Positions 1 through 64,000 of a stretch of DNA of 64,000 nt are shown here, piece by piece. The DNA is from Entomortierella parvispora E1425. Its lineage: Eukaryota > Fungi > Mortierellomycota. The stretch lies in contig BQFW01000001.1 in assembly GCA_020891255.1 (NCBI GenBank), positions 682,001 to 746,000 on the forward strand. Direction: 5' to 3'. The notes beneath the pieces are model-generated. The model was not told where the DNA came from. It saw only the letters and a list, made by a program, of their open reading frames with translations, and did no database searches. Made by a program: the position numbers and the translations under genes. The first letter of the stretch is position 1, and each line of letters starts with the position of its first letter.

Positions 1-1336
1 CCACCTGTCTCAACTCTGCTCCCTCCAATGCCTGTGCTTGATCAACCTTTCCCTGTCCATCTGACACATCTGCGTCAAGTCCTTGCATCTTTTCAAGATA
101 TGCGATCGCGGAGTCAACATGGGGCTCAATGTTTGCCTCGACGCTCTCAAGACCCTTTTGAACTTTATCCAGTCCATCTGCCAACTTAAGATGCGCCAAT
201 GGGGGAACAATGTAGCCAGCAATCGATACTCCATGTTTGACCATCCGCAGCATTCCCAGGATGTAGACACCATATTTCTGAAAGAACTCGTTCGGTCGAT
301 CAAGGTCATAGCCTTCGTGCTTGGCCATATGAATGTGATGAGGGATCTTGCTGTTGGTCGACTTGGTATGCTCGCCACACTCACACAAGAAGAAGAGCCG
401 GAACTTGTCCGTGAACGGACTCAGGATATCCAATCGAGAACTCTCCTTGGGCAACACGATGAAGAGTCGAGGGATGGGATATTCGAGTAGCTCATATGTC
501 TGAGTCAGGATGGCGCGGATCCCCTGTTGGATAGAAATCAACCGCTCGTTGGCTTGTCGTTGAAGCTCCATCATGTTTGTCATCATCTGCCTCATTTCCT
601 CCTGAAGTCCTTTGTTTTCACCCATTTCGTTTTGGAGGATACCAAAGTGCTGACGGAACTCGGCTTTCAACGCCTCTGCTTGCTCCAATTGCCCAGTCTT
701 CATGGAGGCCAGAAAGGACTCGTACAGCTGTCCTGATGTCTGCAATGAGGACCTTGCTGCCATTGTGATGGAGGATGGAAGGGCAGTCTGCGAAGAACCC
801 ATGTCACTGGCGCCTCGATTCAGGTCCTGTCTTTTCATTACGGCGAGCCGGACAAGTCTCCCCACCACAGTATCCGATCCAGGGATAGTAGACACATCGG
901 AAATCGATCCCGTAGAAACCACTGTTTCTTGAGTGGAGTATGATGTTGGACTCTGGGAAGATGAATCCGAAATGGATAAGGTCTCGACTGTGGAAGGGAT
1001 GGCGTCTGTGTTTTTCATGATAGCTTCCAGGATGACTCCTGGGTGATAGGGGATCCTTAGCGGCAGGATCCTACAAGAGTGCGTTGTATATTAGTTTAGT
1101 GCTCATTCGCAGTACCTCTTTGGAAACATGGGACCTTACTCCTCAAAGTCGTCGTTGACCATGAAAGAGACTATAGTATCATCGAATTGAACCGACTGAA
1201 GGTTCTCGAATGCAAACTGAATTCGGCTCCAGAGCACGATGTGACAATTGGTCTTGGGGTCCCAGAGGGCATTGATCTTGATGACAGGACCATCTGGGGA
1301 AGCTCGGAACGACTGGGAGACGGTGGCTATTGTCAT
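1..1336 (-). CDS. Lineage-expanded Mortierellaceae-type protein (N-terminal header domain, S/T-rich linker, coiled coil, YPIPRLFIVLP motif); 3' end runs off the window
   Basis: Exon 1 is 1336-1140 (MTIATVSQSFRASPDGPVIKI...DDFE). A GTAAGG..TTGTAG intron at 1139-1071 restores the frame into ILPLRIPYHPGVILEA. The frame stays open to the window edge through TYELLEYPIPRLFIVLP...HMAKHEGYDLDRPNEFF...ALEGAELR. From recall these motifs mark a Mortierella family that usually ends in RNI-like LRRs, but that part is not visible here. Confidence 0.8.
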
Positions 1337-1418
1337 TGAAAGTAGGACTTCACTTGGTTTTTGGACAAAAGAAGGTCAGGAGATGGAGAAAATGAGGATG
1401 GAGACGAGTCAAGAGTAC

Positions 1419-1450
<32 letters not shown>

Positions 1451-1651
1451 GAGCAGGGCAAACATTTTGCGTGCATGTGGCGTCGATCACTGGATTGCGG
1501 GCTGTGCTGGTGCCATCCCAGACTGGGACATTTCTGTCCTTGCGACTTGCCCTGGCGCATCAAGGTGTGTTGCTCTTGGTTGATTTGCCTGCTTTGAACT
1601 CCTAGCAACCACTAGCTAACCCTCGAGGAATCATCAGGAAGGACTGACAGA

Positions 1652-1680
1652 CAGACCAGACCAGACCAGACCAGACCAGA
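1652..1680. repeat. (CAGAC)n pentanucleotide microsatellite, ~6 units
   Basis: cagaccagaccagaccagaccagaccaga read directly, in the divergent intergenic region. Confidence 0.9.
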
Positions 1681-2382
1681 AAGAGCAGCGCAGACCGTTG
1701 ATTTGTCGCCACCAACTCGCGAATGGGATATTGGTGGCAAGCAGAGAACCAAAGCAGACAACCAACAGAGGCGCCACTCTCTGCACCCTCTCTGCTGTGC
1801 TCACCCGCCCCACCCTGAAGAAGCCGGGAACGTTCCGTCCAGAAAAGAGTCCGCGCTGCCTTTTGTGCTTTGCCCTGATTTCTAACTTTGCCATGGCTCT
1901 CTTTCTCACCCTTGCCTGTCCCCCCTTCGACTTTCTTTGTGCGTGCTTCGCCATGCTTGCCATCCCTACTCATATACAGCGCACAGCTGGCTCTCTGTCT
2001 GGTCCGCTCTTTCCCACACTTCCTCGTCACCCCCTCTTTCTACTACCGCCTCTCTCACGGCAAGTTCCCTTGCTGTCGAATCTGTAAGTCAACCTCCATC
2101 GAATGTGGAACATGGGGCATGGAGCTGATCCACATTCATGTCCATGTCCATTCAATGTCATCAGAGTATGAATGCCACTACGAACACATCATTCACCATC
2201 CCCCTGCCTTTGTAAACTCGTATGTTCTTCAGGCAAATCGAAACTCAAGCTGACAACCATCCTTCTTATAAGTCGATGTGAGTCAAAGGGATCCTCGAAG
2301 TGTTTTTTATTCTTTTTTCGCGCGCATCAAGAGATCCATAATTCTCATACTCTCTTTATTGTTACAAGTAGAATCGTCCGCC

Positions 2383-5300
2383 ATGCAAGCCGGTCTTTCC
2401 TCGACCCAATCTCTCCAGCTTGTCGCCAGTCTTATCAAAAGCTGCCAGGAATCCTCTGATCCCGGAATTCAACTCTGGTATTGCCAAAGTGCCGACGAGA
2501 CTCTGTCTACCCTGAAAAAGAGCGTTAACCGAAACAGCCTGGACTCACAAGAGAGGCAACTGAGAGAAGACATAGGCTGTGCCTATTTTCAATTGGCCAA
2601 AGTTGCGACTGGGCTGGATGCCAAGCTCGTAAAGAAATGGGGCGAGAAGGCTGAAAAGTGGGCGTAAGTGACTTGAGGTGCATGTCGTTTGGTTTGTTGA
2701 ACCTTGGTCTGACTCGAGGGCTTTTTGTTCTATAAACTGCAGGCCAGGACTCAAGACTGGGAGCAAGACCTCTTCTAAGAACAAAAAATGGACAGAAGAT
2801 ATCGCCACTCTTCCTGACAATATCTTTCCGAGAAATACCCGTGCACCAACACTCCCATGGACTTATCCCAAGGTCGACGCTGCTGTAAAAGACACACCAG
2901 AGCTAGTGTCCAGCCTTACTCTCCTACATCGAGCCTCGGAAAAGACCTTGCACAAGAATTCCCTGGATGAAAACACATTGAAATGGCTCGACGACACTGA
3001 GGTTAACGAGGACGAAAAGACGCGACTGAAAAGCCTGGCAAGGCAACTAAGCAGTACTTTCATTGAAGAGAAGATCAAGGACAAGGAAGCCGTGGCTGAG
3101 ATTGTTGTTTTAGCGCCTGTCTTGACCAAAGACGACTTCAGGAGGCTTCTCGGTGAATTCATCGATATGCTTAAAATGACGAGTCTTCTTGACTTGAATA
3201 TCCTCGCGGGTCTGGCTCAGCTTATCAAAGATGCCCCGCCGGATACTCTCCATCCTCAGGACCTTGTTACTATCTTGGACGTAGTAAGCAGTCGACTCCA
3301 AGCAACACACAGTCAAGCAAAGGATCATGTCCACACATTGGTGGTGACCGTCAACGACATCCTTGGCGCTATGGCAGACCAAGGGGTCTCTAAACTTGAC
3401 AAAGTCGAATTGCACGAGCCCCTACTCAATTTCCTGGTCAGTCTCTGGGATAGCTCGGACCCACATATCGTGTACCATGCAAGAAGTGCCTACCAAGCAC
3501 TTCTTTGCGTCCCTGACAACGAGCCGCTCTGGAAGGCAAGGCTCAAGCGAGTTTCAAATGTTGCGACGGGTGTTGTTAGTGTAGCTGCCGGGATTCATGG
3601 CCTTGATACTGGAAATCTCCTTGATGGTCTTGATCGACTCCAGGAGGAGTTTAAGCGAGCTGGCGAGTTCGTGCTAGCCGTTCGTTCATCGTACGCTCAC
3701 AACGATCTTATGACCAGTCTAAAGGAGGGCTTTAAAAGAAAGAACAAAGAACCATGGTACTCAGCACTCCGTAGTGCCGACGAATTCTTGAAGCTAGGGG
3801 AACTGGTTGATTTCAGGAAACTAGTATGTGAGGCACCCTTCAGGAGACATCAGTGGTTTTTGTGGGGCATTTGCGAACGTCTCGGAAATCTTGCTGCCAA
3901 CAAGCAATCCGTCTGGGAATCAATGGACCAACATGGTGCAGTCCTACTTCTGTGTGAGATATACAAAGACGACACCACGTGGGGTAGTCTCCCTGATCTG
4001 AAAAAATACATTCTTGACATTCTGCAGCAGTTGTCATCACCTACTATCGATGTTCCTGGTACGTTCACAATTTCGAACATGCAGACCTTTTATCATTCTT
4101 TAGTGTATCTAATCAACTCTCTAAATGAACATATAGAGGCGAGGGCTTCCTTTTATGAACTGTCAACGAACGGTGGTCCAGAAAAACAGATCCTCTACCA
4201 GGAGTGCGAAAAGGCAGGTCCAAGCAACTATCATATCAAAACAGGCATTTCACGATTTGCCGTGCCTTCCATGTTGGACCGTGTTCAGGGGAAGGCTGAC
4301 GTAAAGGCGGATCTAAGACGTATGGCTCGGAGGAAAGCAAGCGAGAAGAGAGAAGCCTCTTATATCCCTCCTCGTGCTAAGGATAATCTTCAAGCGTCTG
4401 ATGATACAGCCGTCGATCTAGCAGAAACCGTCGCCGGTTTCTTGAAAAGCGATCGCAAGGTTTTATTGCTTCTTGGTGACTCTGGTGTCGGAAAAACAAC
4501 CTTCAACAAGTTCCTCGAACTTCATCTTTGGAGCCAGTACCTGGTCAGGGAGGGATCGATCCCATTGTTTATCAGCCTGTCCGCAATCGAACGCCCAGAT
4601 ACCGACCTCATTCCTAAGCAATTGAGAAAACTTGGGTTTAAGGAAAATCAAATTAGGGGACTTCGGGACCGGCACTTTATTCTAATCTGCGACGGTTATG
4701 ACGAAAGTCAGCAGGTTCGAAACCTGTACACTAGCAACCACTTTAACCAGCCAGATCATTGGAGGGCCCAGATGATCATCAGCTGCAGAACAGAGTACCT
4801 TCCGACAGACTACCAAGGACGATTCGATCCAGGGGATGAAGGGACAGAGGAGGGACAATCTCTTTTCCAACAAGCAGTCGTTTCCCCATTTAACGACATT
4901 CAAATCTACAAGTACATGGAGAAGTACGTCGACCAGAATAATCTTCTGTGGAAGCTTTCCGATTACCTCAGGGTGATGGAAAAGATACCTAGTCTTCAAG
5001 AACTTGTCAAGAACCCCTACCTGCTCTCGATCGCGTTAGAGGTCCTTCCACGGCTGGCAGACCCGGGCCAAGACATTGAAGCTGAGAAAATCACAAGGGT
5101 GCGGATTTATGATGAATTCATGGCTCTTTGGCTTGAACGCGGCAGGAAGAAATTCGAGGAAGACAAGGAACTGAGTCATGAACAGAAGAAGGCCTTCCAA
5201 AGTCTCTGCAACGACGGATTTGTCCAGAGCGGAATGGACTTTATCAGGGACCTGGCGGTGGCCATTTTTGAGAAACAACACGGCAAGACCACAGTCGAAT

Positions 5301-8300
5301 ACTCAAAGAAAATCGACAAAGGGTATTGGAAGGATAGGTTTTTCAGCCTTGACGGCGAGGTTCCAATTCTCTGCAATGTTTGTCCTTTGAATCGCAACGG
5401 AAATCAAATCCAGTTTATTCATCGATCAATCCTGGAGTATGGGTTGAGTCTTGCCATCTTTAATCCTGCTTTGGAACAAGAAGGGTATGAAGTGGAAGAG
5501 CAGGCGCCGTCCCTAAAACGCAGAGGCAGCATTGCCTCTCGATTCAGCTTCGAAGTCGATGAATACAAGGAAGATCTTAAGAGGAACAGGACCGAGGACG
5601 AGGATTTGGACTCTCCATTGTTTAAGCGCAGTTACCTGAAGGAGAGGTCGATTATCCAACTCCTAGTGGAGAGGGTTCAGCAAGATACAACAGGATGTTT
5701 CAAACAACGCCTCTTTGGATATATTACAAAGTCTGCAGAAGCCGAAGAATACCGTACTGCTGCTGCGAATGCCATGACAGTTTTGGTCCGAGCTGGCGTT
5801 TGTTTCTCCCACGAAAACTTGAAAGGCATTCGAATTCCAGGCGCAGATTTGAGTTTTGGGATCTTTGATTCAACTCAACTACAAGAGGCCGACCTTCGGA
5901 TGACGAATTTACAAGGTGCATGGCTACGAAAGACGGATTTGGGTCGCTCAAGGATGGAAGGCGCCCAATTTGGAGAATGGCCAGCCTTAACCCACGAAAA
6001 GATGGAAGGCACATTTGCTTACTCACCGGACGGGAAGCTTCTGATGGCCTTGACAGAAGAGGGTGTGCTAATGTATCATACTTCAACCTGGACCTTGGCA
6101 TCTCTTCCTACCTCGATAAAAGAGGAGGCTGAAGCGAAAATCGCAACATTCGCGTTCTCGCCTGATAGCTCTCTCATAGCAGCCGGTAGAGATGACAACT
6201 CTGTTGTGGTGTGGAGAGCGAAAACGGGGATGATGGTCACCATGTTGGAGGGACACGCCGACCTTCCGAGAGATGTGGCTTTTGCACCTGAAAAAGGCCA
6301 TCAATTTGCTACCTGCGGCAATGATTCTACAGTACGACTCTGGGACAAGTCCCCTTTCCTTCAGGGCTCTGGAGATTGGAAGGCAGGCCTCGTTCTTAGA
6401 GGGCACAGGGGCCCTGTTTTAACAATCAAGTATGACAAAGGTGGGAACATCATTGCCTCCTGTGGTAACGACAAAAGCGTTCGGATTTGGGATCTCGCTT
6501 CGAGAATGTGTATTCATATCCTCACAGAACACACTGGTCAAGTGGCGGGAATATCCTTTTCCCCTGCAAATTCATCCGCATACCGCCAGCTCTCTTCGTT
6601 TGCATTCGATCACTCTATCAAGCTCTGGAACGCGGATACCGGCGTCTGCGAGCATACACTCCAAGGACACAAAGCAACCATCCGCGCAGTATCATACTCC
6701 CCGAAAGGAAACTACCTCGTCTCTGCGAGTTCAGACTGCACAATCAGAGTATGGGACACATTAACCGGTCGACTGGTTAACACAATTCAAGTCCATGCCC
6801 AAGTCAATGATGTCGTATATTCTCCGAATGGGTTACAGATAGCAGCTGCTTGCGACGACAGCACTGTCCGACTTTGGCACTCTGAAGACTGGACTACACC
6901 TGGCCCAATCCTTAGCGGTCATTCTGACGGAGTGAAGCACGTATCCTATGCTCCTGACGGCTTTCAGCTAGCATCCAGTGGCTGGGACGAATCGATACGA
7001 CTTTGGGTATCTGTTACATCCAATCAGCAGCAATATCGCAGACACAGGTCAGAGGTTACTCAAGTTTCGCGTCTTGAAGGGGGCAAGTTCATTGTATCGC
7101 GATGCAAGGATTCTGTGCGGATCTGGAACGACGCTACAGGAAGTCTTCGTCATTCGCTTCCGAATAACCTCAAGATCACCGTGATGGCGACATCTCCGTG
7201 CGGTTTGCAATTTGCCACTGCGGGAACGGCCGACAACATCATCAGACTGTGGGAGCCCCAAAGCGGACAGTGCAAGCTCAAACTATATGACAGCAAGGAA
7301 CGGACTGTCGCTATCAGTTCTTCGTCGGAACAGATGGAGCGGATCACCGATATTGCCTATTCGTCTGATGGCTACCGGCTTGCCTCGGGCTGTCTTGATG
7401 GAATGGTACGAATTTGGAATTGGCGCGACGGTACCTTGATACACCGATTAAAGAACAGCAACAAGGGGACACATTTGGTCTTCTCACCTTCTGGAAGCGG
7501 ATTGCTGGCTACGGCTGAAAGCAACATTATTCAAATTTGGGATGTTGTGAAAGGAGTGCGCCTTCACAAGTTGTACGGGAATCAAAACACGATCGAAAAA
7601 TTAGCGTTCTCGTCGGAAGGGGACTTTATTACCACGGCTGCTGTGGATGGCTACTTCCGAACATGGAGTACTCAAAGTGGTGCGTTGACTCTCACTTTAA
7701 ACCATGGATTCGCCAAACCTGCTCTGATGACTGCCGATGCATCCAAGGGCGTGATGGTCTCCTCGAACGGCCTACTGAGCGTCTATGATTTTCTGCAGAA
7801 GAAACGCCTTTGGGAACTTCCAAGTTCTGGTGGACGAGCAGCTGTAGCCCTTTCCCCGGATGGACGACTTCTGGTTCACAGCGCCAAGGATGGGCTTTTG
7901 GTCTTGTGGGACATCACCAATGGAAAGAGCGTGGGCCAGTTCAAGACTCTGACAAACCGTATCACCAGTCTAGACTGGAGCCTTGAAGAAGGAAAGGCTC
8001 AGACCAAGATCACCGTTGGTCATGAAGAGGGAGATATCAGTGTCTGGTCCGTAGTCGAGATGGCCCCTGCCCTCACTGACGCTGTAGTAATCTCTGCCCA
8101 ACAGAAATATGATTTCTTGCTACTGTGGACCTCTGCGAACAAGAAATTGAACGTGGAGGGCATGTCCATCGAAGGTGTCAAGGGCCTGAGCTCCACAAAT
8201 GCCCGATTGCTGGAGCAAAATGATGCGCGGGGTAAACCGGAAGGCCTGTGGAAGAAGGCCCAGAAGGTCATTACCATGAACAAGGTGATCTCCAACCTCA

Positions 8301-8326
8301 AGAAAGCGGTTCCGGTGGAAGAGTAA
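2383..8326 (+). CDS. NLR-like STAND protein: helical N-terminus, ARM-like region, NACHT, pentapeptide repeats, WD40 repeats
   Basis: Exon from ATG 2383 and a phase-2 intron at 2664-2742 (GTAAGT..CTGCAG) join the 1882-aa ORF. Walker A is LLLLGDSGVGKTT and Walker B is ILICDGYDE. Pentapeptide stretch LKGIRIPGADLSFGIFDSTQLQEADLRMTNLQGAWL, then >12 GH..WD repeats. Probable stopless intron at 4059-4136. The exact start may lie in a small upstream exon. Confidence 0.92.
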
Positions 8327-8394
8327 ACGACGTGGGGCCAATGGCGCCCTTTTTTTCTACTGCTAGATGTTTTTCGATTAAATATTTATTTCTT

Positions 8395-8551
8395 GTCGTC
8401 ATCGGACGAGAAACCAGCTCCTGTTGTCGCCGCTTCAGAAGATGCGGCTGTGGATCAGGCAACAGCAGGACTTCTTTTCATTTGATGAAAAAGTTGGCTT
8501 ACAAAGATGGCACGTCAGTGAGGGTGCCTGCTTCCTCGGGCAAGGAGGCTG

Positions 8552-8592
<41 letters not shown>

Positions 8593-8760
8593 GAAAAGTT
8601 GGTCAGAACTGGATATCAGAACCTGAATGTTCGGTGTAAAGTAAGCACATGGTGAACTATCTTAAGAGTGATGGCGAACATTGTTGGTACCACTTCCCCC
8701 TCACCTCCACCTCATAACAGATTTCTTCTTTGTAATCCTCTGCTGCAAACGCGTCGATTG
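8395..8760 (-). pseudogene. Decayed partial duplicate of the JJJ1/DNAJC21 3' end (last exon, last intron and part of the preceding exon)
   Basis: gtcgtcatcggacgagaaaccagctcctgttgtcg..gaagatgc aligns with 12875-12940. aaaaagttggct, gcctgcttcctc, the poly-A, gaaaagt..gtcagaa and agagtg.tgg.gaacatt..g.tacc follow in the same order as 12980-13225. 8700-8760 encodes FAAEDYKEEICYEVEV versus [17 protein letters not shown] in JJJ1. Internal deletions and stops are present. Confidence 0.85.
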
Positions 8761-9146
8761 TGGAGGGGCTGTGCTGCTGTGAGTGCGTTGCTTTTTTTTT
8801 TTTTTTTTGAAACAAAGGTGGTGTCCGACAACAGCGGCGAGCTGAGTCTTGGGAAAGAAAGGTTGCGCTCCCATCACCACGAATGGATTCTTCAAATGCA
8901 CAGACTCAAGACAACACCCACGGATCTCAGAGACGTCCGTGGTTGTCAGTTTGGGTCTTTGCGATGCCAAATATCCTGCCGGTGCCCTTGAAATTTTCTT
9001 TGTGGAACCACATGACATGGCGAAGCAGCACTTTCTCTTTGGAGATCACTCTTGCACCTTTCTTCCTTTCCTCCTCTCTTTGCCTTAATTCGACATCCCT
9101 TCCTGCCATCCCTCCTTCTTCAGTGACACGGCCATCCAGAGCGACC

Positions 9147-12100
9147 ATGGATGACACTATGGCGTCCCGCGCTGCTATTTCCCTGACTGGCTTCGAAAAT
9201 ATAAACCTCGATGGCTCCCATGGCCTTGACTCGTTGGTCATGAATTACTTTAGCGGTGCTGGCTTGACTGTCGTATTAAACGCACTCAGGTAACAAAGCC
9301 AACTACTCATACAAAAATACTCACAGCGACCCCTTCTTGAAACTCACTCCGTGAACATCCTCCCATCTCTTGCCATGAATTGACCCTTCAGATTTTTGGA
9401 CGGTATAGCCCAAGGAGATCCAGTTGCTCAAAATAATGCAGGGCGAATGTATGAGAATGGCGAAGGCGTTCCACAATGCTACAAAAAAGCCATGGAGTTT
9501 TATTTAAAGGCTGCCCGCCAAGGCAAAGCCGCTGCCCAGAACAACGTTGCTACCCTGTACCGTGACGGTAAGGGTGTTCTTACAAGCGAAACGGATGCCA
9601 AAGAATGGTTTTCCAAGGCTGCTAATCAAGGAATTGCCGATGCACAGTTCAACTTGGGAATGATCTATCGTCGAAACAATGACCGTACTCGGGCTATGGA
9701 ATGGCTCCAGAAGGCTGCCAACCAAGAACATGGAATGGCTCAGTTCAGTGTTGGCGCAATGTATTATGAAGGATATGGCGTTCCCCAGGACCTGTCGAAA
9801 GCCATGGAGTGGTATTTAAGGGCCTCCGATAAAGGATGCGCAATTGCTCAGTTTAGCATTGGCGCCATGTATGATAGTGGTGAGCGCGTTGGCCAGGACT
9901 GCTCTATTGCGGCTGAATGGTACTTAAAGGCGGCCGTCCAAGGATATGCCGAGGCTCAGTTTAACCTCGGCATCTTATACCAACATGGCAGAGGTGTTTC
10001 ACTAGACAATTCCTCGGCAATCATGTGGTACATGAGGGCGGCGGACCAAGGGCTCGTCCAGGCTCAGTATCATGTAGGACTTTTGCATCATGTTGGTGGA
10101 ACTATTTCACAAGACAAACTCAAAGCTGTAGAATGGTATTATAAGGCTGCCAGTCAAGGGAATATCGACGCGCAGTTCAGCCTAGGCACGATGTACTATG
10201 ATGGCGACGGCATCAGTCAGGACTGTCAGAAAGCGGAAGAGTTGTTTTTGCTAGCGGCCGCCCAGGGACACGCCACAGCTCAGTACAACCTAGGGTTCCT
10301 TTACCAACATACCAGAGCAGCCAAGATGGGTAATTCCATGGCTATTGAATGGTACAAAAAATCAGCTGACCAAGGGAACCCTGACGCTCTATTCTGTCTG
10401 GGGGTCATGTACTATCATGGCAAAGATATTCCGCAGGATCACACAGAGGCGTTGGAGTGTTACCTCAAGGCTGCGGAACAAGGACACGCAGCTGCTCAGA
10501 ACTACGCTGGATGCATGTACTGCGAAGGCCATGGAGTGCCCAAGGATTTCTTTCAAGCTGCAAAATGGTACACCCGGTCGATTAACCAAGGATTCGTCTC
10601 TGCTATGAAAAACATGGGCCACTTGTACGAACATGGCAAGGGTGTTCCCAAGGACTACCAGAAAGCTATGGAGTGGTTTCTAAAGGCAGCCGATCAAGGG
10701 AACACCAATGCTCAGAACAACATTGGGTCGATGTACGCTAGTGGCAAGGGTGTTCCCCAGGACTGCCAGAACGCTATGGAGTGGTATATGAAGGCCGCCG
10801 ATCAAGGGAACGCCAGTGCTCAGGACAGCATTGGGTCGATGTACTATAATGGCAAAGGTGTTCCCCAGGACTACCAGAAAGCTATGGAGTGGTATTTGAA
10901 GGCCGCTGATCAAGGGAACGCCAGTGCTCAGAACAACATTGGGATGATGTACTATAATGGCAAAGGTGTTCCCCAGGACTACCAGAAAGCTATGGAGTGG
11001 CTTCTGAAGGCCGCTGATCACGGGAACGCCGATGCTCAGATCAACATTGGATCAATGTACTATAATGGCAAGGGTGTTCCCCAGGACTACCAGAAAGCTA
11101 TGGAGTACTTTCTGAAGGCAGCCGATCAAGGGAACATCAGTGCCCAGTACAACATTGCTTGGATGCACGAAAATGCCAAGGGTGTTCGCCAGGACTACCA
11201 GAAAGCTATGGAGTGGTATCTGAAGGCAGCCGATCGAGGGAACCCCGATGCTCAGAACAACATTGGATCAATGCACTATGATGGCAAGGGTGTTCCCCAA
11301 GACTACCAGAAAGCTATGGAGTGGTTGCTGAAGGCCGCCGATCAAGGGAACGCCAGTGCTCAGGACAACTTTGGGTCAATGTACAAAAATGGCAAGGGTG
11401 TTCCCCAGGACTACCAGAAAGCTATGGAGTGGTATTTGAAGGCCGCCGATCAAGGGAACGCCAGTGCTCAGGACAACATTGCGTCGATGTACTATCATGG
11501 CAAGGGTGTTCGCCAGGACTACCAGAAAGCTATGGAGTGGTTTCTGAAGGCCGCCGATCAAGGGAACGCCAGTGCTCAGAACAACATTGGGACGATGTAC
11601 TATAATGGCAAAGGTGTTCGCCGGCACTACCGGACAGCTATGGAGTGGTTTCTAAAGGCAGCCGATCAAGGGAATACCTATGCTCAGAACAACATTGGGT
11701 CGATGTACACTAGTGGCGAAGGTGTTCCCCAGGACTACCAGAAAGCTATGGAGTGGCTTCTAAAGGCAGCCGATCGAGGGAACCCCGATGCTCAGAACAA
11801 CTTTGGGTGGATGTATGCTAATGGCAAAGGTGTTCCCCAGGACTACCAGAAAGCTATGGAGTGGTATCTGAAGGCCACCAATCAAGGGAGCGCCAGTGCC
11901 CAGATCAACATTGGATCAATGTACTATAATGGCAAGGGTGTTCCCCAGGACTACCAGAAAGCTATGGAGTGGTATTTGAAGGCCGCCGATCAAGGGAACG
12001 CCAGTGCTCAGGACAACATTGCGTCGATGTACTATCATGGCAAGGGTGTTCGCCAGGACTACCAGAAAGCTATGGAGTGGTTTCTGAAGGCCGCCGATCA

Positions 12101-12704
12101 AGGGAACGCCAGTGCTCAGGACAGCATTGGGTTGATGTACTATATGGGCAAAGATGTTCGCCAGGACTACCAGAAAGCTATGGAGTGGTTTCTGAAGGCA
12201 GTCGATCAAGGGGACGCCAATGCTCAGAACAACATTGGGATGATGTACAAAAATGGCAAGGGTGTTTCCCAGGACTACCAGAAAGCTATGGAGTGGTTTC
12301 TGAAGGCCACCGATCAAGGGAGCGCCAGTGCCCAGATCAACATTGGATCAATGTACTATAATGGCAAGGGTGTTCCCCAGGATTACCAGAAAGCTATGGA
12401 GTGGTATTTGAAGGCCGCCTATCAAGGGAACGCCAGTGCTCAGGACAGCATTGGGTCGATGCACTATAATGGCAAATGTGTTCCACAGGACTACCAGATA
12501 GCTATGGAGTGGTATCTGAAGGCAGCCGATCAAGGAAACGCCAGTGCTCAGAAAAACATTGGGTCGATGTACTATAATGGCAAAGGTGTTCCCCAGGACA
12601 AACAAAAAGCTACGGAGTGGTATCTGAAGGCCTCCGATCAAGGGAACGTCGATGCCCAGAACCACATTAGGCCAGTGATGGCGAAAATGTTCTCCTGGAA
12701 ATAA
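9147..12704 (+). CDS. Sel1-like repeat (SLR/TPR) protein, ~30 repeats of 36 aa
   Basis: Exon 1 is 9147-9289 (MDDTMASR..VLNALR). A phase-2 intron at 9290-9391 (GTAACA..CTTCAG) joins the 1102-aa ORF. Canonical Sel1 consensus AQxNIGxMYxxGKGVPQDYQKAMEWYLKAADQG. Confidence 0.95.
10635..12662 (+). repeat. Intragenic tandem array of ~19 near-identical 108-nt units
   Basis: ggtgttccccaggactaccagaaagctatggagtgg recurs every 108 nt. Sequence lines 11401/11941 and 11461/12001 are identical (540-nt offset). Confidence 0.97.
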
Positions 12705-13083: not shown

Positions 13084-13119
<36 letters not shown>

Positions 13120-15231: not shown

Positions 15232-15795
15232 GGCGGTGATTTGATTAGGTCGAACAAAGAATGAATGAATGCTGTGAATGTCAGAGAGTGCGCGAGTTGA
15301 GCAGCCATAAAGAAAAAAAAAAAATGGAAAAAGGCATTAAGGGTGCAATCTCGGGATGTATCGGTCACATGACCCATTGACACGTGCGCGATTTTTTCAT
15401 CTCTCCACTCCACCTTCTTCGGCTCCTTTGAGTCCGTGGAAAAAAAAAAAAAAAAAAAAAAAAAAAAGAAGGTAGTGTGATCATAGACACACACACCCTC
15501 TCGGCATCTTTCCTTCTCTCTCTTTCTCTCTCTCTTCCTTCTTTTCTCCACATCCCCCCATCCCCCATCCGTCCGACTGTGTCGTGTGCTCTTCTTTGTC
15601 TCGCCTCGCCTCGACTCTCCAAAGGCCGCTCGGATCAGATCCCCACACCGCATTCGCCTCTTTTTGTGCTTTTCTGTTTCTCTGCTCCATCATAAAGAGA
15701 CACCCAATCTCATCCTCCGACCCAAAGACCTTTGCTAAACACCACGGCCTGGACGTTCCCCGCACTCTTTTGCCTTTCCTCGTCCCAACTATTTG

Positions 15796-57803: not shown

Positions 57804-58895
57804 AAGAAGAAAAAAAGATATCCGGATAAGCTTGCTTCCCTGACTGTCTGCCCACAGCCGTGCAGCTCGTCTTAATAAATTGATATACTTGAATCCGACA
57901 CGGTGAAGTGAGTGCTTCGCAATGATTCAAAAAGCAAACACAGAAGTTAACCGTGATGTAGGCACCTTATGTGAGGGCGAGGTACGTTTGATCTCCTGTT
58001 CTTGGAACTTTTGGCGTGGCTAGTGCGGCGTGTTCCTTCGCCTGCATAGCACCCATCTGCCACCTGCTTGGTCAATGCACAAACAACAGCCCACGAAAAA
58101 AATGTCGCCAAGGTTTTCAACTTCCCCAGGCGCTCATTGTCTCTCTCTTCTTTCGCGCAACGGATTCTTACAAGTTACGTCGTCGTATTGTGGAAGGACT
58201 TGCTCTACCAACACTTTTGAAAAGGCCATACGCTTGCGAGCCTTGAGATATCGAGATCCACGGATTTGTTCAAGAAGTTCCCCATATGACTTCGCAAGCA
58301 GTGGAAATAGTGCCCACCCATTTAGGAGGGTCTGTTCTTCGAAATCTTCCACTATCTCTACTATCCGCTTCTCACAGAGTCGGATGAAACGCTGTCTTTT
58401 TGTCCTTCATATTCTAAGAGGCGGCATCAAGGGAGGAAGGGAAAGTAGTAATGAAGAGAAAAATAAAAAACGTCGTGCAAAAACAATCCAGTGCAAAAGA
58501 AAAAATGTCTTTCTACCCTTGTAACGTGGGTGGCCAATTGAGTGTCGTGCAATTTTGCACTTTACACGCTGTTGAATATGGCTCAGAACCATGTCCAATT
58601 CAAGCTCAGATATTGCAGTTTGTACGACCGCAAGTATGAATTACATGGCGGTGGCGCAGAAATGTCAACAAAAATATAAAAAGTCGAGAGCGTGGTCTTT
58701 CTCCTTTCTTCTCTCAACAACCACTTTCATTCTCATCGCCCTTCATCGCAGATTGTGTTGCCGCTCTCTCATCACTCTTATCGTCATCACCACTCAGCTC
58801 TTGCTCATCATCGCTTGACCTCGTTCCCAGTGTCTGAGCCTTTCTTCCCCCTTCCCCTGGAAAGATGTCGCTGTCACCATTTCTATTTTTTTAAA

Positions 58896-60224
58896 ATGGC
58901 ACAGACACATCCTCTCGAGTTACATGAGATTCGATCCAGAATTGCCTGTGGCCTTCAGCCCAAAGATCTTGCGTCCTGCGCGCGTGTGAGTCGTGACTGG
59001 AATGGCTCATTCACACCACCACTCTACAAGAGTGTCTCCATGATGGATAACGGACCTTCCATGGAAGCTGTCATGCAAAATAAGCGCTTGATACAACGAC
59101 TCCACATCAATAGTCCTCTCCTTTCAACCCTATCAACATCCGCACGAGTTGAATTCATTTCCAGCATCATGACCGGCTCAGTTCTCACTACTCTAGACCT
59201 GACAAGCACTCCGATAAGAGAAATTGAGGCCAGGGCACTAGCTCTGGCTATCGAGACCAATTCTACTCTGACTACCTTGAAGTTGAAACGTTGTTCGATT
59301 TCAGCGACAGGCGCACAGATGCTGGCAAAAGCACTCGAGATCAACGCAACTTTGACCTTTTTATCTTTGGATATGAACGATGTCAGAGAAAACGGAGCTT
59401 TAGCGTTGGCCGAGGCACTCAGGATTAACTCGACTCTTTCCACTTTGAATTTGTGGGGCAACAAAATTGAGGACCAAGGGGTTCAAGCGCTGGTCAGTGC
59501 ACTCAAGATAAATTCAGCTTTGTCCAGCCTGGGGCTGTGCGGCAATTTTATCGAGGATCAAGGAGCTCAGGAGCTGGCCGAGTTGCTCAAGACCAACTCG
59601 ACCCTTACCACGTTGGACTTGACATCCAATTGTATCGAGTGGTCTGGGGCTCAGGCACTAGCAGAGCCACTCAAGACGAATTCAGCTCTAACCACCCTGG
59701 AGTTGAGATGCAACGATATCGGGGATCGAGGAGCTCTGGCGCTGGCGGAGGCACTCAAGATCAACACGACTCTGACTGACCTAGACTTGGACCTGGGAGG
59801 CAACTCAATTGGACAAGATGGAGCCAAGATGTTGGCTGAGGCACTCAAATCGAATTCGGTTCTGAATAGTTTGGACTTGAGTGATAACTCAATTGGATGT
59901 AATGGAGCTGAAGTCCTGGCTCAGGCATTGAAGTTCAATTTGTCTCTAACCTGTCTTCATTTGGGATCCAACGGTATTGGAGACGATGGAGCGCAGGCAC
60001 TAGCAGAGGCACTCAAGACGAACTCTGTTCTGACCACTTTAGAATTGTGGTCCAATATGATTGGGGCCAATGGGGCTGTGGCTCTAGCTATGTCACTCAA
60101 GATCAACTCGACTTTGTCAATCTTGAACTTGATGGACAACCCTATCGAACACAATGGAACGCTCGCACTGAATGAGGTACTCAAGACCAACCCGACCGTT
60201 TCCATATCATACCATGCTAGCTAG
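58896..60224 (+). CDS. F-box-like N-terminus plus 12 RNI-like (28-aa) leucine-rich repeats
   Basis: HPLELHEIRSRIACGLQPKDLASCARVSRDWNGSFTPPLYKSV, followed by repeats such as NSTLTTLDLTSNCIEWSGAQALAEPLKT. Intronless. Confidence 0.9.
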   Translation: MAQTHPLELHEIRSRIACGLQPKDLASCARVSRDWNGSFTPPLYKSVSMMDNGPSMEAVMQNKRLIQRLHINSPLLSTLSTSARVEFISSIMTGSVLTTLDLTSTPIREIEARALALAIETNSTLTTLKLKRCSISATGAQMLAKALEINATLTFLSLDMNDVRENGALALAEALRINSTLSTLNLWGNKIEDQGVQALVSALKINSALSSLGLCGNFIEDQGAQELAELLKTNSTLTTLDLTSNCIEWSGAQALAEPLKTNSALTTLELRCNDIGDRGALALAEALKINTTLTDLDLDLGGNSIGQDGAKMLAEALKSNSVLNSLDLSDNSIGCNGAEVLAQALKFNLSLTCLHLGSNGIGDDGAQALAEALKTNSVLTTLELWSNMIGANGAVALAMSLKINSTLSILNLMDNPIEHNGTLALNEVLKTNPTVSISYHAS

Positions 60225-61780: not shown

Positions 61781-64000
61781 CTACTCTTCTATAACACTCT
61801 TCTTTGCATCCCCGAGAGAGCTGGTCGAAGCCTGGCTCTGCTCTCTGAACTTTGAGATCTTGCTCTTGCTCTTGCTCGAGAACGCCGCGATGGCACTCAT
61901 AGCCGTCGGTGTCAGCAAAGTTGATGAGGGTGATGATGAATGGCTGGACACCAGAGTAGTGCTGCTCCCACCCCAACCTTGATCTGTAGAGGAAGCTGCG
62001 GCCGCCAGAGGAAGGTCGCCTCTCTTCATCTTGGACGACGTGAAGGCCGAAATGACTGATTCCGCCAATTTCGTCTCTGCCCCTGCTTGCTGATTTTGTG
62101 TTTTGTTTTTCATGCTCGCGCCGATTAATCGCTCGGCTGCCTGTCGCAATGTGATGGTGGGAGCGGGTTCGCCTTTTGCGCCACGCTGTTTCAAGAGTCG
62201 AGCGTTACCGGCGCCTAGGTCAGTGACGCCCTCGATGCAGGTGTCGTTGGCCACTAACTTTCCATAAGCCGAGGTCCAAACCAATACAACCCTTCGCAAG
62301 GGTTCCTGCTTCTTGTCCTTCTCAAAGGTTCCTGAACGCGTTTCCTGACTCGAGGTGAGTGTTGAATCCACAGCTGGAGTTGGTTCTGGATTTTCAAGGA
62401 CACGCCAGGTGCTGACACTCATATCCTCACATCCCAAGCTAAAGCTGGTGCCCTCAAAAGTCGGATCCACATCCAGGCACGTCACTCGACCTGGCAATTT
62501 GTCCAGTACCGCCAGCGCCTGACCTGTTCGACTGCACCATACACGTGCAGAACTCTTCGCCATGTCACCGCCCGCTGAAATAATCCTTTCTCCATCAGGC
62601 GTAAAGGCAACACCGGTAACACTTCCACTATCGCCACACACGGAAAACCTCTGTTTGCCTGTTTCAACGTCCCAGACTTGGATATTCTGTCTAGAAACGT
62701 TGGATGCGATTTGTTTCCCATCAGGCGAGAACACAACAGACACCGTGCCATAATGCGTCGCCATTGTCGTCACAGCCTGTCCAGTCTTGGGATCCCACAG
62801 TCGGCATGTCTTGTCCTCGCCAGCTGATGCCAACAGTCGTCCATCGGGGGAATAGACGACACTCATAGCTCTATCGGTATGCCCCTTCAATATGAATTGA
62901 CATTCGCCAGTGCGTGGGTCCCAGAGTCGGATTGTATGATCGTTTGATGAGGATGCGATTTGATTCCCTGATGGTGAAAAGACGACACTTCTTAACGCGT
63001 CCACGTCGTTCAAGATCCGAACCAGCGTACCACGGTGTCGGTCCCACAAACGAAGCGTCCTGTCATAACTAGCCGAGACGACCAGATTGCCATCGGGTGA
63101 ATAGGCAACGTCCACGACCGCTTTTGTGTGGCCCTCCAAAACAAACTTGCACCGGCCAGCTGCAAGGTCATGCAATCGCACAGTTCCATCGTCACCGCAA
63201 GTGGCTGCCTCAAATCCAGTAGGGGCATGAGCCCAGCGGTGTATCTTCTCCCTGTGTCCAGTTTTGACTTCAATGGACTCACCAGTCATCTTATCCCATA
63301 GTCTAATACTCGAATCGGGACTCACAGAACCCACCATTTGACTTCCTGAAAGATATGACAAATGTAGAGGCGGTTGGGTATGGCCATCTCGGGCAGGAGC
63401 CGACTTTGCACTTCGGGCGTCCCAAAGGCGAATGGCCTTGTCTCGACCTGAAGATGCCAGCTGGAGACCGTTGGGGTGATATGCGATTCCATGAACAGCG
63501 ACATTGTGACCTTGAAGGGTTGCGATGTTGACACCAGTCTGTGCGTCCCACTGTCGCACAGTAAAGTCCCAACTGCTTGTGGCGACTTGGAGAGAGTCGG
63601 GTGAGAAGGCGATGGCGCGGACTACCTTAAAGTGTCCCTTCAAAATTGGCCCCGGTGCTCCTGTTTCCGCATCCCAAAGTCGCGCTGTCATGTCCTTGCT
63701 GGTGGTGGCGATCTGAAGTCCATTGGGTGAATATTCTATGGACGTAATGTCGGCTGTGTGTCCTTCCAAGGTGTAGAGGCACCGGCCACTGGCCACATCC
63801 CATATTCTTGCGGTACCATCCATACTTGCAGACGCAACCCGATCACCGGACCGAGAGAACTTGGTCATGACCACACTTTCAGTATGGCCACTGAGAACAT
63901 ATACACATTCTCCTGTCCTAGTGTCCCAAAGGCGTACGTTTTTGTCGTCGCAAGAGGATACTAGCAATTTTCCATCGGGCGAGAAGGCGACATGGGAAAC
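61781..64000 (-). CDS. WD40-repeat C-terminal part of a probable second NACHT-WD40 NLR-like protein; 5' part outside the window
   Basis: >728-aa open frame of GH..WD repeats. Its C-terminal cap LVWTSAYGKLVANDTCIEGVTDLGAGNARLLKQRGAKGEP matches LLWTSANKKLNVEGMSIEGVKGLSSTNARLLEQNDARGKP of the 2383-8326 gene. Confidence 0.88.
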   Translation of the reverse strand, partial: VSHVAFSPDGKLLVSSCDDKNVRLWDTRTGECVYVLSGHTESVVMTKFSRSGDRVASASMDGTARIWDVASGRCLYTLEGHTADITSIEYSPNGLQIATTSKDMTARLWDAETGAPGPILKGHFKVVRAIAFSPDSLQVATSSWDFTVRQWDAQTGVNIATLQGHNVAVHGIAYHPNGLQLASSGRDKAIRLWDARSAKSAPARDGHTQPPLHLSYLSGSQMVGSVSPDSSIRLWDKMTGESIEVKTGHREKIHRWAHAPTGFEAATCGDDGTVRLHDLAAGRCKFVLEGHTKAVVDVAYSPDGNLVVSASYDRTLRLWDRHRGTLVRILNDVDALRSVVFSPSGNQIASSSNDHTIRLWDPRTGECQFILKGHTDRAMSVVYSPDGRLLASAGEDKTCRLWDPKTGQAVTTMATHYGTVSVVFSPDGKQIASNVSRQNIQVWDVETGKQRFSVCGDSGSVTGVAFTPDGERIISAGGDMAKSSARVWCSRTGQALAVLDKLPGRVTCLDVDPTFEGTSFSLGCEDMSVSTWRVLENPEPTPAVDSTLTSSQETRSGTFEKDKKQEPLRRVVLVWTSAYGKLVANDTCIEGVTDLGAGNARLLKQRGAKGEPAPTITLRQAAERLIGASMKNKTQNQQAGAETKLAESVISAFTSSKMKRGDLPLAAAASSTDQGWGGSSTTLVSSHSSSPSSTLLTPTAMSAIAAFSSKSKSKISKFREQSQASTSSLGDAKKSVIEE

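Follow-up and report, generated by a model that had tools for sequence, protein, structure and literature searches.

Three genes of three expanded families

We analysed a stretch of 64,000 nucleotides from contig 1 of the soil fungus Entomortierella parvispora E1425 (G000:C1:682001-746000, hereafter the window; assembly of 38.9 Mb in 20 contigs), the genome of which has been described together with the bacterial endosymbiont Mycoavidus sp. B2-EB (PMC8759367). The analysis centres on three adjacent genes at 680-695 kb of the contig: a leucine-rich repeat (LRR) gene of the YPIPRLFIVLP (YPIP) family (gene 1), a gene for a NOD-like receptor (NLR; NOD, nucleotide-binding oligomerization domain) with WD40 repeats (gene 2), and a stand-alone Sel1-repeat gene (gene 3). 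An initial annotation had taken them for a head-to-head NLR pair accompanied by a variable Sel1 component. On balance, we lean towards a reading in which three separate genes from three large, lineage-specific families lie side by side, uncoupled, in an arm of contig 1 that is rich in NLRs. The features, in window coordinates, are as follows.

1..1336, minus strand: 5' part of gene 1, the YPIPRLFIVLP-family gene (gene model and translation; first exon at about 1139-1336, one intron, then the main open reading frame)
1337..2382, no strand: gap between the start codons of genes 1 and 2 (1,046 bp, divergent), with a 27-nt poly(A/T) run at 1419-1445
2383..8326, plus strand: gene 2, the NLR gene EMPS_00163 (exon 1 2383-2664, intron 2665-2743, the rest from 2744 with one further intron of ~78 nt)
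2978..3910, plus strand: ARM_5 (PF23948), N-terminal helical repeats of gene 2 (204.7 bits, 2.9e-60; residues 101-411 of the open reading frame starting at 2678)
4460..4744, plus strand: best-matching stretch of the NACHT NTPase domain (PF05729, 29.5 bits versus a cut-off of 26.7)
5840..5941, plus strand: pentapeptide stretch between NACHT and WD40 (PF00805, 22.3 bits versus a cut-off of 20.2)
6014..7981, plus strand: WD40 β-propeller region, about two propellers with ~14 blades (PF00400, 253.8 bits, at least 7 stretches)
9147..12704, plus strand: gene 3, the Sel1-repeat gene (exon 1 9147-9289, intron 9290-9391 (GTAACA...CAG), exon 2 9392-12704)
9444..10631, plus strand: Sel1 “head” of 11 diverged units (mean 54% nt identity among themselves)
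10632..12683, plus strand: Sel1 “tail” of 19 near-identical 108-nt units (repeat finding and unit alignment)

Gene 2 encodes a product of 1,928 residues (P0001), and its large plus-strand open reading frame (ORF) is 99% identical to EMPS_00163. It is an NLR of the STAND class (signal transduction ATPases with numerous domains), with a NACHT domain that carries a P-loop (Walker A motif GDSGVGKT at residue 646 of P0001), N-terminal ARM_5 repeats and a C-terminal repeat region; the order ARM-NACHT-pentapeptide-WD40 had been read correctly from the start. Many other β-propeller families match the WD40 region as well. Its units went undetected as a DNA tandem repeat by Tandem Repeats Finder, as did those of the three paralogues checked, in agreement with the earlier remark that the WD40 repeats of the NLR itself are diverged. 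Homologues at 33-49% identity are found in Mortierella, Benniella, Podila, Linnemannia, Gamsiella and Dissophora. No orthologue above ~45% was found outside the species, the sole close relative being a paralogue on contig 12 (C12) with 69-72% identity. In a protein of this architecture, the WD40/pentapeptide C-terminus would hold the NACHT ATPase inactive as long as no ligand is encountered; once one is, oligomerization might gather the ARM_5 N-terminal domains, the putative signalling part of gene 2. Local alignments of the N-terminal 130 residues of the NLR against its neighbours, made in search of a shared amyloid-type motif, gave only weak matches of low identity that do not resemble prion motifs, with best scores of 55 against the YPIP protein (shuffle maximum 49) and 37 against the Sel1 protein.

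Gene 1 lies on the minus strand and extends 1,654 nt to the left of the window, to G000:C1:680346. Its annotated product (P0095, 974 aa) opens with MTIATVSQSF, the start codon lying at window position 1336; the main ORF comprises 891 aa (L008:846-3518, minus strand), and the YPIPRLFIVLP motif lies in this long frame after the intron. The head-to-head arrangement with gene 2, about 1 kb apart, was thus described correctly, the start codons at 1336 and 2383 being divergent. From its N-terminus onwards, the product comprises a conserved domain of ~65 aa, a coiled coil, some 200 aa of core with Cys/His residues, and an LRR of the ribonuclease inhibitor (RI)/NLRP type. Sequence searches of the product found no Pfam domain above noise, hence no Pfam NOD, and no Walker A motif (GxxxxGK[ST]). 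An AlphaFold2 model of ORF residues 130-560, built with 40 homologues at a predicted local distance difference test (pLDDT) score of 78, has a long coiled coil, a small α/β region and an RI/NLRP-type LRR from about residue 380. Fold search of this model revealed that the LRR resembles those of NLRP1, NLRP3, NOD2, RanGAP and RI, with Z-scores of 10-12. Modelled alone (pLDDT 69), the core matched helical hairpins at best (Z-score 5.7) and no P-loop NTPase, and an ESM Atlas search of it was uninformative, with scores of at most 0.78 and only F-box/LRR-like hints. The core alignment has invariant Cys/His positions (C..C, H...H.GY, W.C.DH). We considered the core as a degenerate NOD and rejected this candidate, as it has neither a P-loop nor an NTPase-like fold.

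Gene 1 therefore encodes not an NLR but an LRR protein, from a Mortierellaceae family that is uncharacterised, since it lacks a P-loop and a Pfam NOD and its model consists of a coiled coil, a core of unfamiliar fold and an LRR. It follows that the pair of genes 1 and 2 is not an NLR pair and that the analogy with sensor/helper NLR pairs, on which the initial annotation had built, does not apply. The YPIP family has at least 924 database members, and all those listed with a source name are from Mortierellaceae and are called “hypothetical”; at least 36 loci are present in the E. parvispora genome. The family is thus very large without Pfam annotation, and its tripartite layout is NLR-like without a nucleotide-binding domain.

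Gene 3 starts 821 bp past the stop codon of the NLR gene, on the same strand. Its canonical intron of 102 nt is in frame and separates a first exon of 48 codons from the repeat array. The product of ~1,151 aa consists of a 48-aa N-terminus and 30 Sel1 units, 29 full units of 36 aa and one 32-aa variant in register, and has no obvious signal peptide; PF08238 matches it with 962 bits in 29 stretches, and domain searches found no NOD and no domain besides Sel1. As had been noticed initially, the gene next to the NLR is therefore a NOD-less Sel1 array, and it is a gene of its own, with start codon, intron and stop, rather than a C-terminal domain of the NLR. We would expect the product to be a cytosolic α-solenoid with a binding function.

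The array has two distinct parts. The head units are one-to-one positional counterparts of units in the paralogues on C12 and contig 5 (C5), with up to 94% nt identity to the latter. By contrast with the head, the tail is nearly uniform: Tandem Repeats Finder reports 10633-12668 with a period of 108, 18.9 copies and 86% matches, and 16 anchored units share a mean nt identity of 86% (range 74-100%). Each anchored unit finds a better match in its own gene (0.79-1.00) than the best among the six paralogous Sel1 genes compared (0.74-0.84). The tail thus has high internal conservation, with a mean nt identity above ~85% and units closer within the gene than to paralogues. Units 16-17 and 20-21 form a block duplicate, at 100% and 96%. 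Variation is concentrated at 11 of the 36 unit positions (1, 6, 16, 25, 26, 29, 30, 32, 33, 35 and 36), which hold 68% of the non-synonymous codon differences (1,057 non-synonymous versus 372). The ratio of non-synonymous to synonymous substitution rates (dN/dS, Nei-Gojobori) is 1.9 at these positions, a value biased upward because the site classes were picked after inspecting the data, compared to 0.23 elsewhere and 0.63 overall, with dS ~0.22.

We read the tail of 16-19 units as a probable recent intragenic amplification with a re-tuned surface. Its C-terminal units may have been amplified through unequal crossing-over and block duplication while varying at defined surface positions, a pattern that would be expected of a binding surface under rapid re-tuning. 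The initial annotation had described the array as being homogenised. The near-identical units, closest within their own gene, agree with that description; as dS is ~0.2 and identical blocks are few, recent amplification with block duplication fits equally well.

Recurrence of the linkage within the genome and in other species

Whole-genome searches gave 77 ARM_5 loci, with all 88 candidates scored, of which 41 are close paralogues of the WD40 type, and at least 39 Sel1 loci; the lists of both NLR and Sel1 loci are lower bounds. Observed adjacencies were compared with two null models, uniform genome-wide placement and a local shift of each locus by 30-150 kb, the latter keeping regional clustering. 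The NLR-YPIP-Sel1 trio occurs at this locus only. The initial annotation had suggested checking whether the three-gene linkage recurs, and had itself named uniqueness to one locus among the outcomes that would speak against its proposal; judged in this way, the three-gene linkage fails. NLR and YPIP genes within 3 kb of each other were observed once versus 0.94 expected under uniform placement and 1.45 under the local shift, and their adjacency stayed at chance at 3, 5 and 10 kb. YPIP and Sel1 genes within 3 kb were likewise observed once (expected 0.32, uniform; 0.48, local shift).

Two loci are looser echoes of the arrangement. On contig 7 (C7), a YPIP gene (minus) and an NLR gene (plus) are divergent and ~7.3 kb apart. 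On C5 (L014:2613-8523 = G000:C5:1072613-1078523), a YPIP gene (minus) lies head-to-head with a Sel1 gene (plus) at ~0.8 kb, with NLR genes 10-20 kb off. The YPIP genes of both loci are only ~24-26% identical to gene 1 and are therefore not copies of a conserved unit. Units 03-06 of the C5 Sel1 gene share 87-94% nt identity with head units 02-05 of gene 3, far above the overall 78%, as if sequence had passed between the contigs by gene conversion or had been partially copied very recently.

Beyond E. parvispora, we sampled, with 10-kb flanks where the contig allowed, four loci of NLR homologues (E. chlamydospora, Benniella sp., M. polycephala and E. beljakovae) and the loci of the two closest YPIP homologues, both from Gryganskiella cystojenkinii at 51-60% identity. 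Precomputed Pfam calls and tblastn gave no Sel1 neighbour at any of the four NLR loci, and no NLR or Sel1 neighbour at either Gryganskiella YPIP locus. Since only ~6-13% are paired within the genome itself, so small a sample carries little power. A local hidden Markov model of the genome's own units found Sel1 repeats in none of the 94 proteins from the NLR search, comprising 59 fungal homologues from other Mortierellaceae, two paralogues from the genome itself and a remainder of WD40 proteins that are mostly prokaryotic or metagenomic, nor in any of 120 YPIP homologues. With the Sel1 head as query, HMMER gave 240,679 hits, ordered by the length of the array, none above 47% identity, and did not pick out Mortierellaceae orthologues. 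At the E. chlamydospora (L029) and Benniella sp. (L030) loci, the sampled NLR has another ARM_5-NACHT homologue within a few kb on its upstream side, forming tandem NLR-NLR pairs; in the former, this second copy is absent from the called genes.

As for the setting, contig 1 has 14 ARM_5 loci at 229-749 kb. Near the right edge of the window, an F-box/LRR_6 gene (58692-60224, plus) precedes a further ARM_5 NLR, of which the WD40 end is inside (61781-63967, minus) and the 5' part past the edge, at C1:746.6-749.7 kb; the window is thus within an NLR-rich stretch. The flanking genes include ordinary ones of housekeeping type, a homeobox gene upstream and genes for a zf-C2H2_jaz protein, an AMPK-CBM protein and a GTPase downstream. 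At this locus, expanded-family genes are inserted among conserved ones rather than making up an accessory island of their own. The intergenic DNA beside each gene contains uninterrupted poly(A/T) runs of 27-37 nt (1419-1445, 8552-8588, 13084-13112 and 15440-15467).

The association between NLR and Sel1 genes

The uniqueness of the trio and the chance-level adjacency of NLR and YPIP genes agree with three uncoupled neighbours, and we infer that coupling among the three genes is absent. Several observations on the NLR and Sel1 genes weigh against this reading. For all ARM_5 loci, five NLR-Sel1 adjacencies within 3 kb were observed versus 1.03 expected under uniform placement (p=0.008) and 1.90 under the local shift (p=0.039); for the 41 WD40-type NLRs the numbers are 4 versus 0.55 (p=0.0025) and 1.22 (p=0.024). 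NLR-Sel1 adjacency is hence modestly enriched, about 3- to 7-fold above expectation, although 72 of the 77 ARM_5 loci and 34 of the 39 Sel1 loci are unpaired. Moreover, two fusions within the same genome join NLR domains to Sel1 repeats, namely ARM_5-NACHT-WD40x15-Sel1x3 on contig 13 (C13) and ARM_5-Sel1 on contig 2 (C2). In addition, Sel1 arrays serve elsewhere as the repeat domain of STAND NTPases, in NB-ARC-Sel1 and Patatin-DUF7779-Sel1 proteins of bacteria, DUF7779 being an NB-ARC-associated module, and in TIR-NACHT-Sel1 proteins; an NB domain fused to Sel1-like repeats is reported from Klebsormidium (PMC7145615). Finally, both gene counts are minimum figures, and far more loci of other species would be needed to rule out a pairing rate of 5-15%. 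The paired and fused loci are listed here.

C1, this locus: NLR then Sel1, same strand
C12:451.5-461.5 kb: Sel1 then NLR, same strand
C10:624.6-635.3 kb (contig 10): Sel1 and NLR, convergent
C13:2,054-2,060 kb (L013:2024-7980 = G000:C13:2054024-2059980), plus strand: one frame with NACHT, 15 WD40 repeats, an acidic linker and three Sel1 repeats
C2:2,502.5-2,505.0 kb (L032:7491-9994 = G000:C2:2502491-2504994), plus strand: ARM_5 exon joined to a Sel1-bearing exon, no NACHT

The C13 gene, with its upstream ARM_5 exon, is annotated as a single protein of 2,327 aa (P0220; source name “protein HIRA/HIR1”). The C2 gene has a canonical in-frame intron (GTATGA...TTAG, ~127 nt) and belongs to a cluster of six Sel1 genes at C2:2,486-2,508 kb. 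The Sel1-seeded searches returned NB-ARC-Sel1, nSTAND1-Sel1, TIR-NACHT-Sel1 and Patatin-DUF7779-Sel1 proteins, architectures of P-loop plus Sel1 being common; by analogy, Sel1 arrays can in principle act as sensor modules of NLRs. The NB-ARC-Sel1 and Patatin-Sel1 matches were considered as fungal and rejected, the gene context being bacterial in both.

Comparison of the C1 and C12 pairs showed that the NLR genes share 76% nt identity and the Sel1 genes, including ~400 nt upstream, 73%, with a permuted gene order. The divergence of the NLR and Sel1 genes matches, and the two pairs are co-duplicates. The order is circularly permuted between the two copies (L009+L010 = G000:C12:451170-461510 versus window 2329-12314), and the NLR frame on C12 is broken by stops near 457.34 kb, where the window NLR has a small intron. 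The C10 pair, in which a close Sel1 paralogue (62% aa) adjoins a distant NLR (36% aa), probably represents an independent event. Order and orientation vary among the paired loci, from tandem NLR-Sel1 (C1) through tandem Sel1-NLR (C12) to convergent (C10).

The enrichment is gone by 25-50 kb, and is therefore confined to genes that directly adjoin. When the C12 pair is dropped as a co-duplicate, three adjacencies remain versus 0.53 (p=0.02, uniform) and 1.02 (p=0.07, local shift) expected; with separate genes only, leaving aside the C13 tail, the values are p=0.018 (uniform) and p=0.09 (local shift). One C1/C12 co-duplication together with family clustering thus accounts for most of the NLR-Sel1 recurrence. 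There remains, in one genome, a modest association of ARM_5 NLRs with Sel1 arrays, both statistical and architectural, and we regard the link between the two as a plausible but unproven lead. The narrower idea of a Sel1 partner for the NLR gains some support from the adjacencies on C12 and C10, the fusions on C13 and C2 and the 3- to 7-fold enrichment; this support is weak in view of the co-duplication, the mostly unpaired loci, the varying order and orientation, and the four loci of other Mortierellaceae (none with a Sel1 neighbour).

The strongest rival to three uncoupled neighbours is a two-gene receptor module, which we consider possible but doubtful. Here, the Sel1 array would supply fast-evolving recognition or adaptor specificity in trans by binding the WD40 or ARM_5 part of the NLR, the pair would stay together since matched alleles must be co-inherited, and the fusions would be its Rosetta-stone versions. 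Such a module would explain the enriched adjacency, the co-duplication of the C1 and C12 pairs at equal divergence, the two fusion architectures within the same genome, the STAND-Sel1 proteins of bacteria and algae, and a Sel1 tail that is conserved internally with focused non-synonymous variation beside an NLR with diverged WD40 repeats. It sits less well with only three separate-gene pairs among 41-77 NLRs, two of them co-duplicates, with significance that fades to p=0.07-0.09 under the regional null, with a gene order and orientation that are not conserved, with a C10 pair that couples a close Sel1 paralogue to a distant NLR, and with the Sel1-free NLR loci of other Mortierellaceae; moreover, the dN/dS contrast draws on post hoc sites. 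A more specific proposal, a split receptor of Mortierellaceae in which an NLR with a conserved WD40 sensor would rely on the re-tuned Sel1 array, acting in trans, for specificity or as an adaptor and the fusions would be the joined forms, is in our view unlikely.

Still less probable is gene fission or decay, by which the stand-alone Sel1 gene would have come from an NLR that once carried Sel1 in cis, or the reverse, and adjacency would be a remnant without present coupling. The C13 NLR does bear a Sel1 tail behind WD40 in one frame, and the C1 NLR has the Sel1 gene immediately 3' of it, in the same orientation. Against this, the conserved 5' exon, the intron and the upstream region of the Sel1 gene are its own and common to the C12 copy, which is itself placed 5' of its NLR; the majority of the 39 Sel1 genes have no NLR nearby; and the C13 tail has just three repeats and a distinct acidic linker. 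The idea of a three-component locus, in which the YPIP-LRR protein serves as a second sensor or helper via a shared 1-kb promoter and the Sel1 protein as the third, variable component, draws on the divergent start codons, on the NLR-like tripartite YPIP protein with its terminal NLRP/RI-type LRR and on the echoes on C7 and C5, and deserves hardly any credence given a YPIP protein without NOD or P-loop, a chance-level NLR-YPIP adjacency, a trio unique to the locus, closest YPIP homologues without either neighbour, C5 and C7 genes too dissimilar to be copies, and no convincing motif common to the NLR N-terminus and its neighbours.

Three uncoupled neighbours thus remain the reading we prefer, and the present value of the analysis is mainly corrective: the “NLR pair” is no pair, and the trio is unique to this locus. 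The surviving NLR-Sel1 lead can be stated in numbers and tied to defined loci and to two fusion genes, and the description of a very large unannotated YPIP-LRR family is a by-product. Fungal NLRs are numerous, a ligand or partner is known for hardly any of them, and those of early-diverging fungi have received very little study. Should Sel1 arrays indeed act with ARM_5 NLRs, they would offer a concrete and testable two-gene system in a culturable fungus with a bacterial endosymbiont. A split receptor would be a division of labour not yet described among NLRs of fungi, and this in a lineage with Mycoavidus endobacteria.

Comparison with known systems

Paired NLRs of plants, such as RPS4/RRS1 and RGA4/RGA5, combine a sensor and a helper. 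Among fungi, 13 head-to-head NLR pairs have been reported in Sordariales (PMC12258605). Similar to these pairs, genes 1 and 2 bear repeats and are divergent, ~1 kb apart. They differ in that gene 1 is without a nucleotide-binding domain and the pairing does not recur.

In its architecture, gene 2 resembles the NLRs of Mortierellomycetes and Pezizomycotina with a long helical N-terminal domain termed “NLR_Helical” (Wojciechowski et al. 2022, PMC9815663), a family most numerous in Linnemannia elongata (PMC9815663), in that ARM_5 and NACHT are followed by repeats. Compared to the NLR_Helical proteins of other genera, it stands apart: no orthologue above the level given above was found, and its C12 paralogue is the only close relative. 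The combination of NACHT and WD40 in gene 2, and the near-identical repeats with few hypervariable positions at the locus, recall HET-E, HET-D and NWD2 of Podospora. However, unlike in those proteins, high conservation among repeats is found here in the Sel1 units of a separate NOD-less gene, and the WD40 repeats of gene 2 are diverged; and unlike systems of the NWD2/HET-S type, gene 2 and its neighbours have no amyloid-type motif in common.

With respect to STAND proteins that carry Sel1 in cis, the C13 paralogue P0220 is alike in holding NACHT and Sel1 in one protein. The Sel1 array of the locus, by contrast, is a gene of its own, and the C13 Sel1 repeats follow a full WD40 region instead of replacing it. 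Sel1-like families are also known from the Glomeromycotina: in Rhizophagus irregularis they are high-copy accessory or signalling genes, with the repeats often carried by kinase-like proteins (PMC8647823, PMC8778642), and Sel1 repeats are reported on homologues of the MLKL pseudokinase family (PMC8778642). Compared to these proteins, gene 3 has only a 48-aa N-terminal extension and no further domain. Nevertheless, like them, it comes from a lineage-specific, repeat-rich Sel1 family in Mucoromycota.

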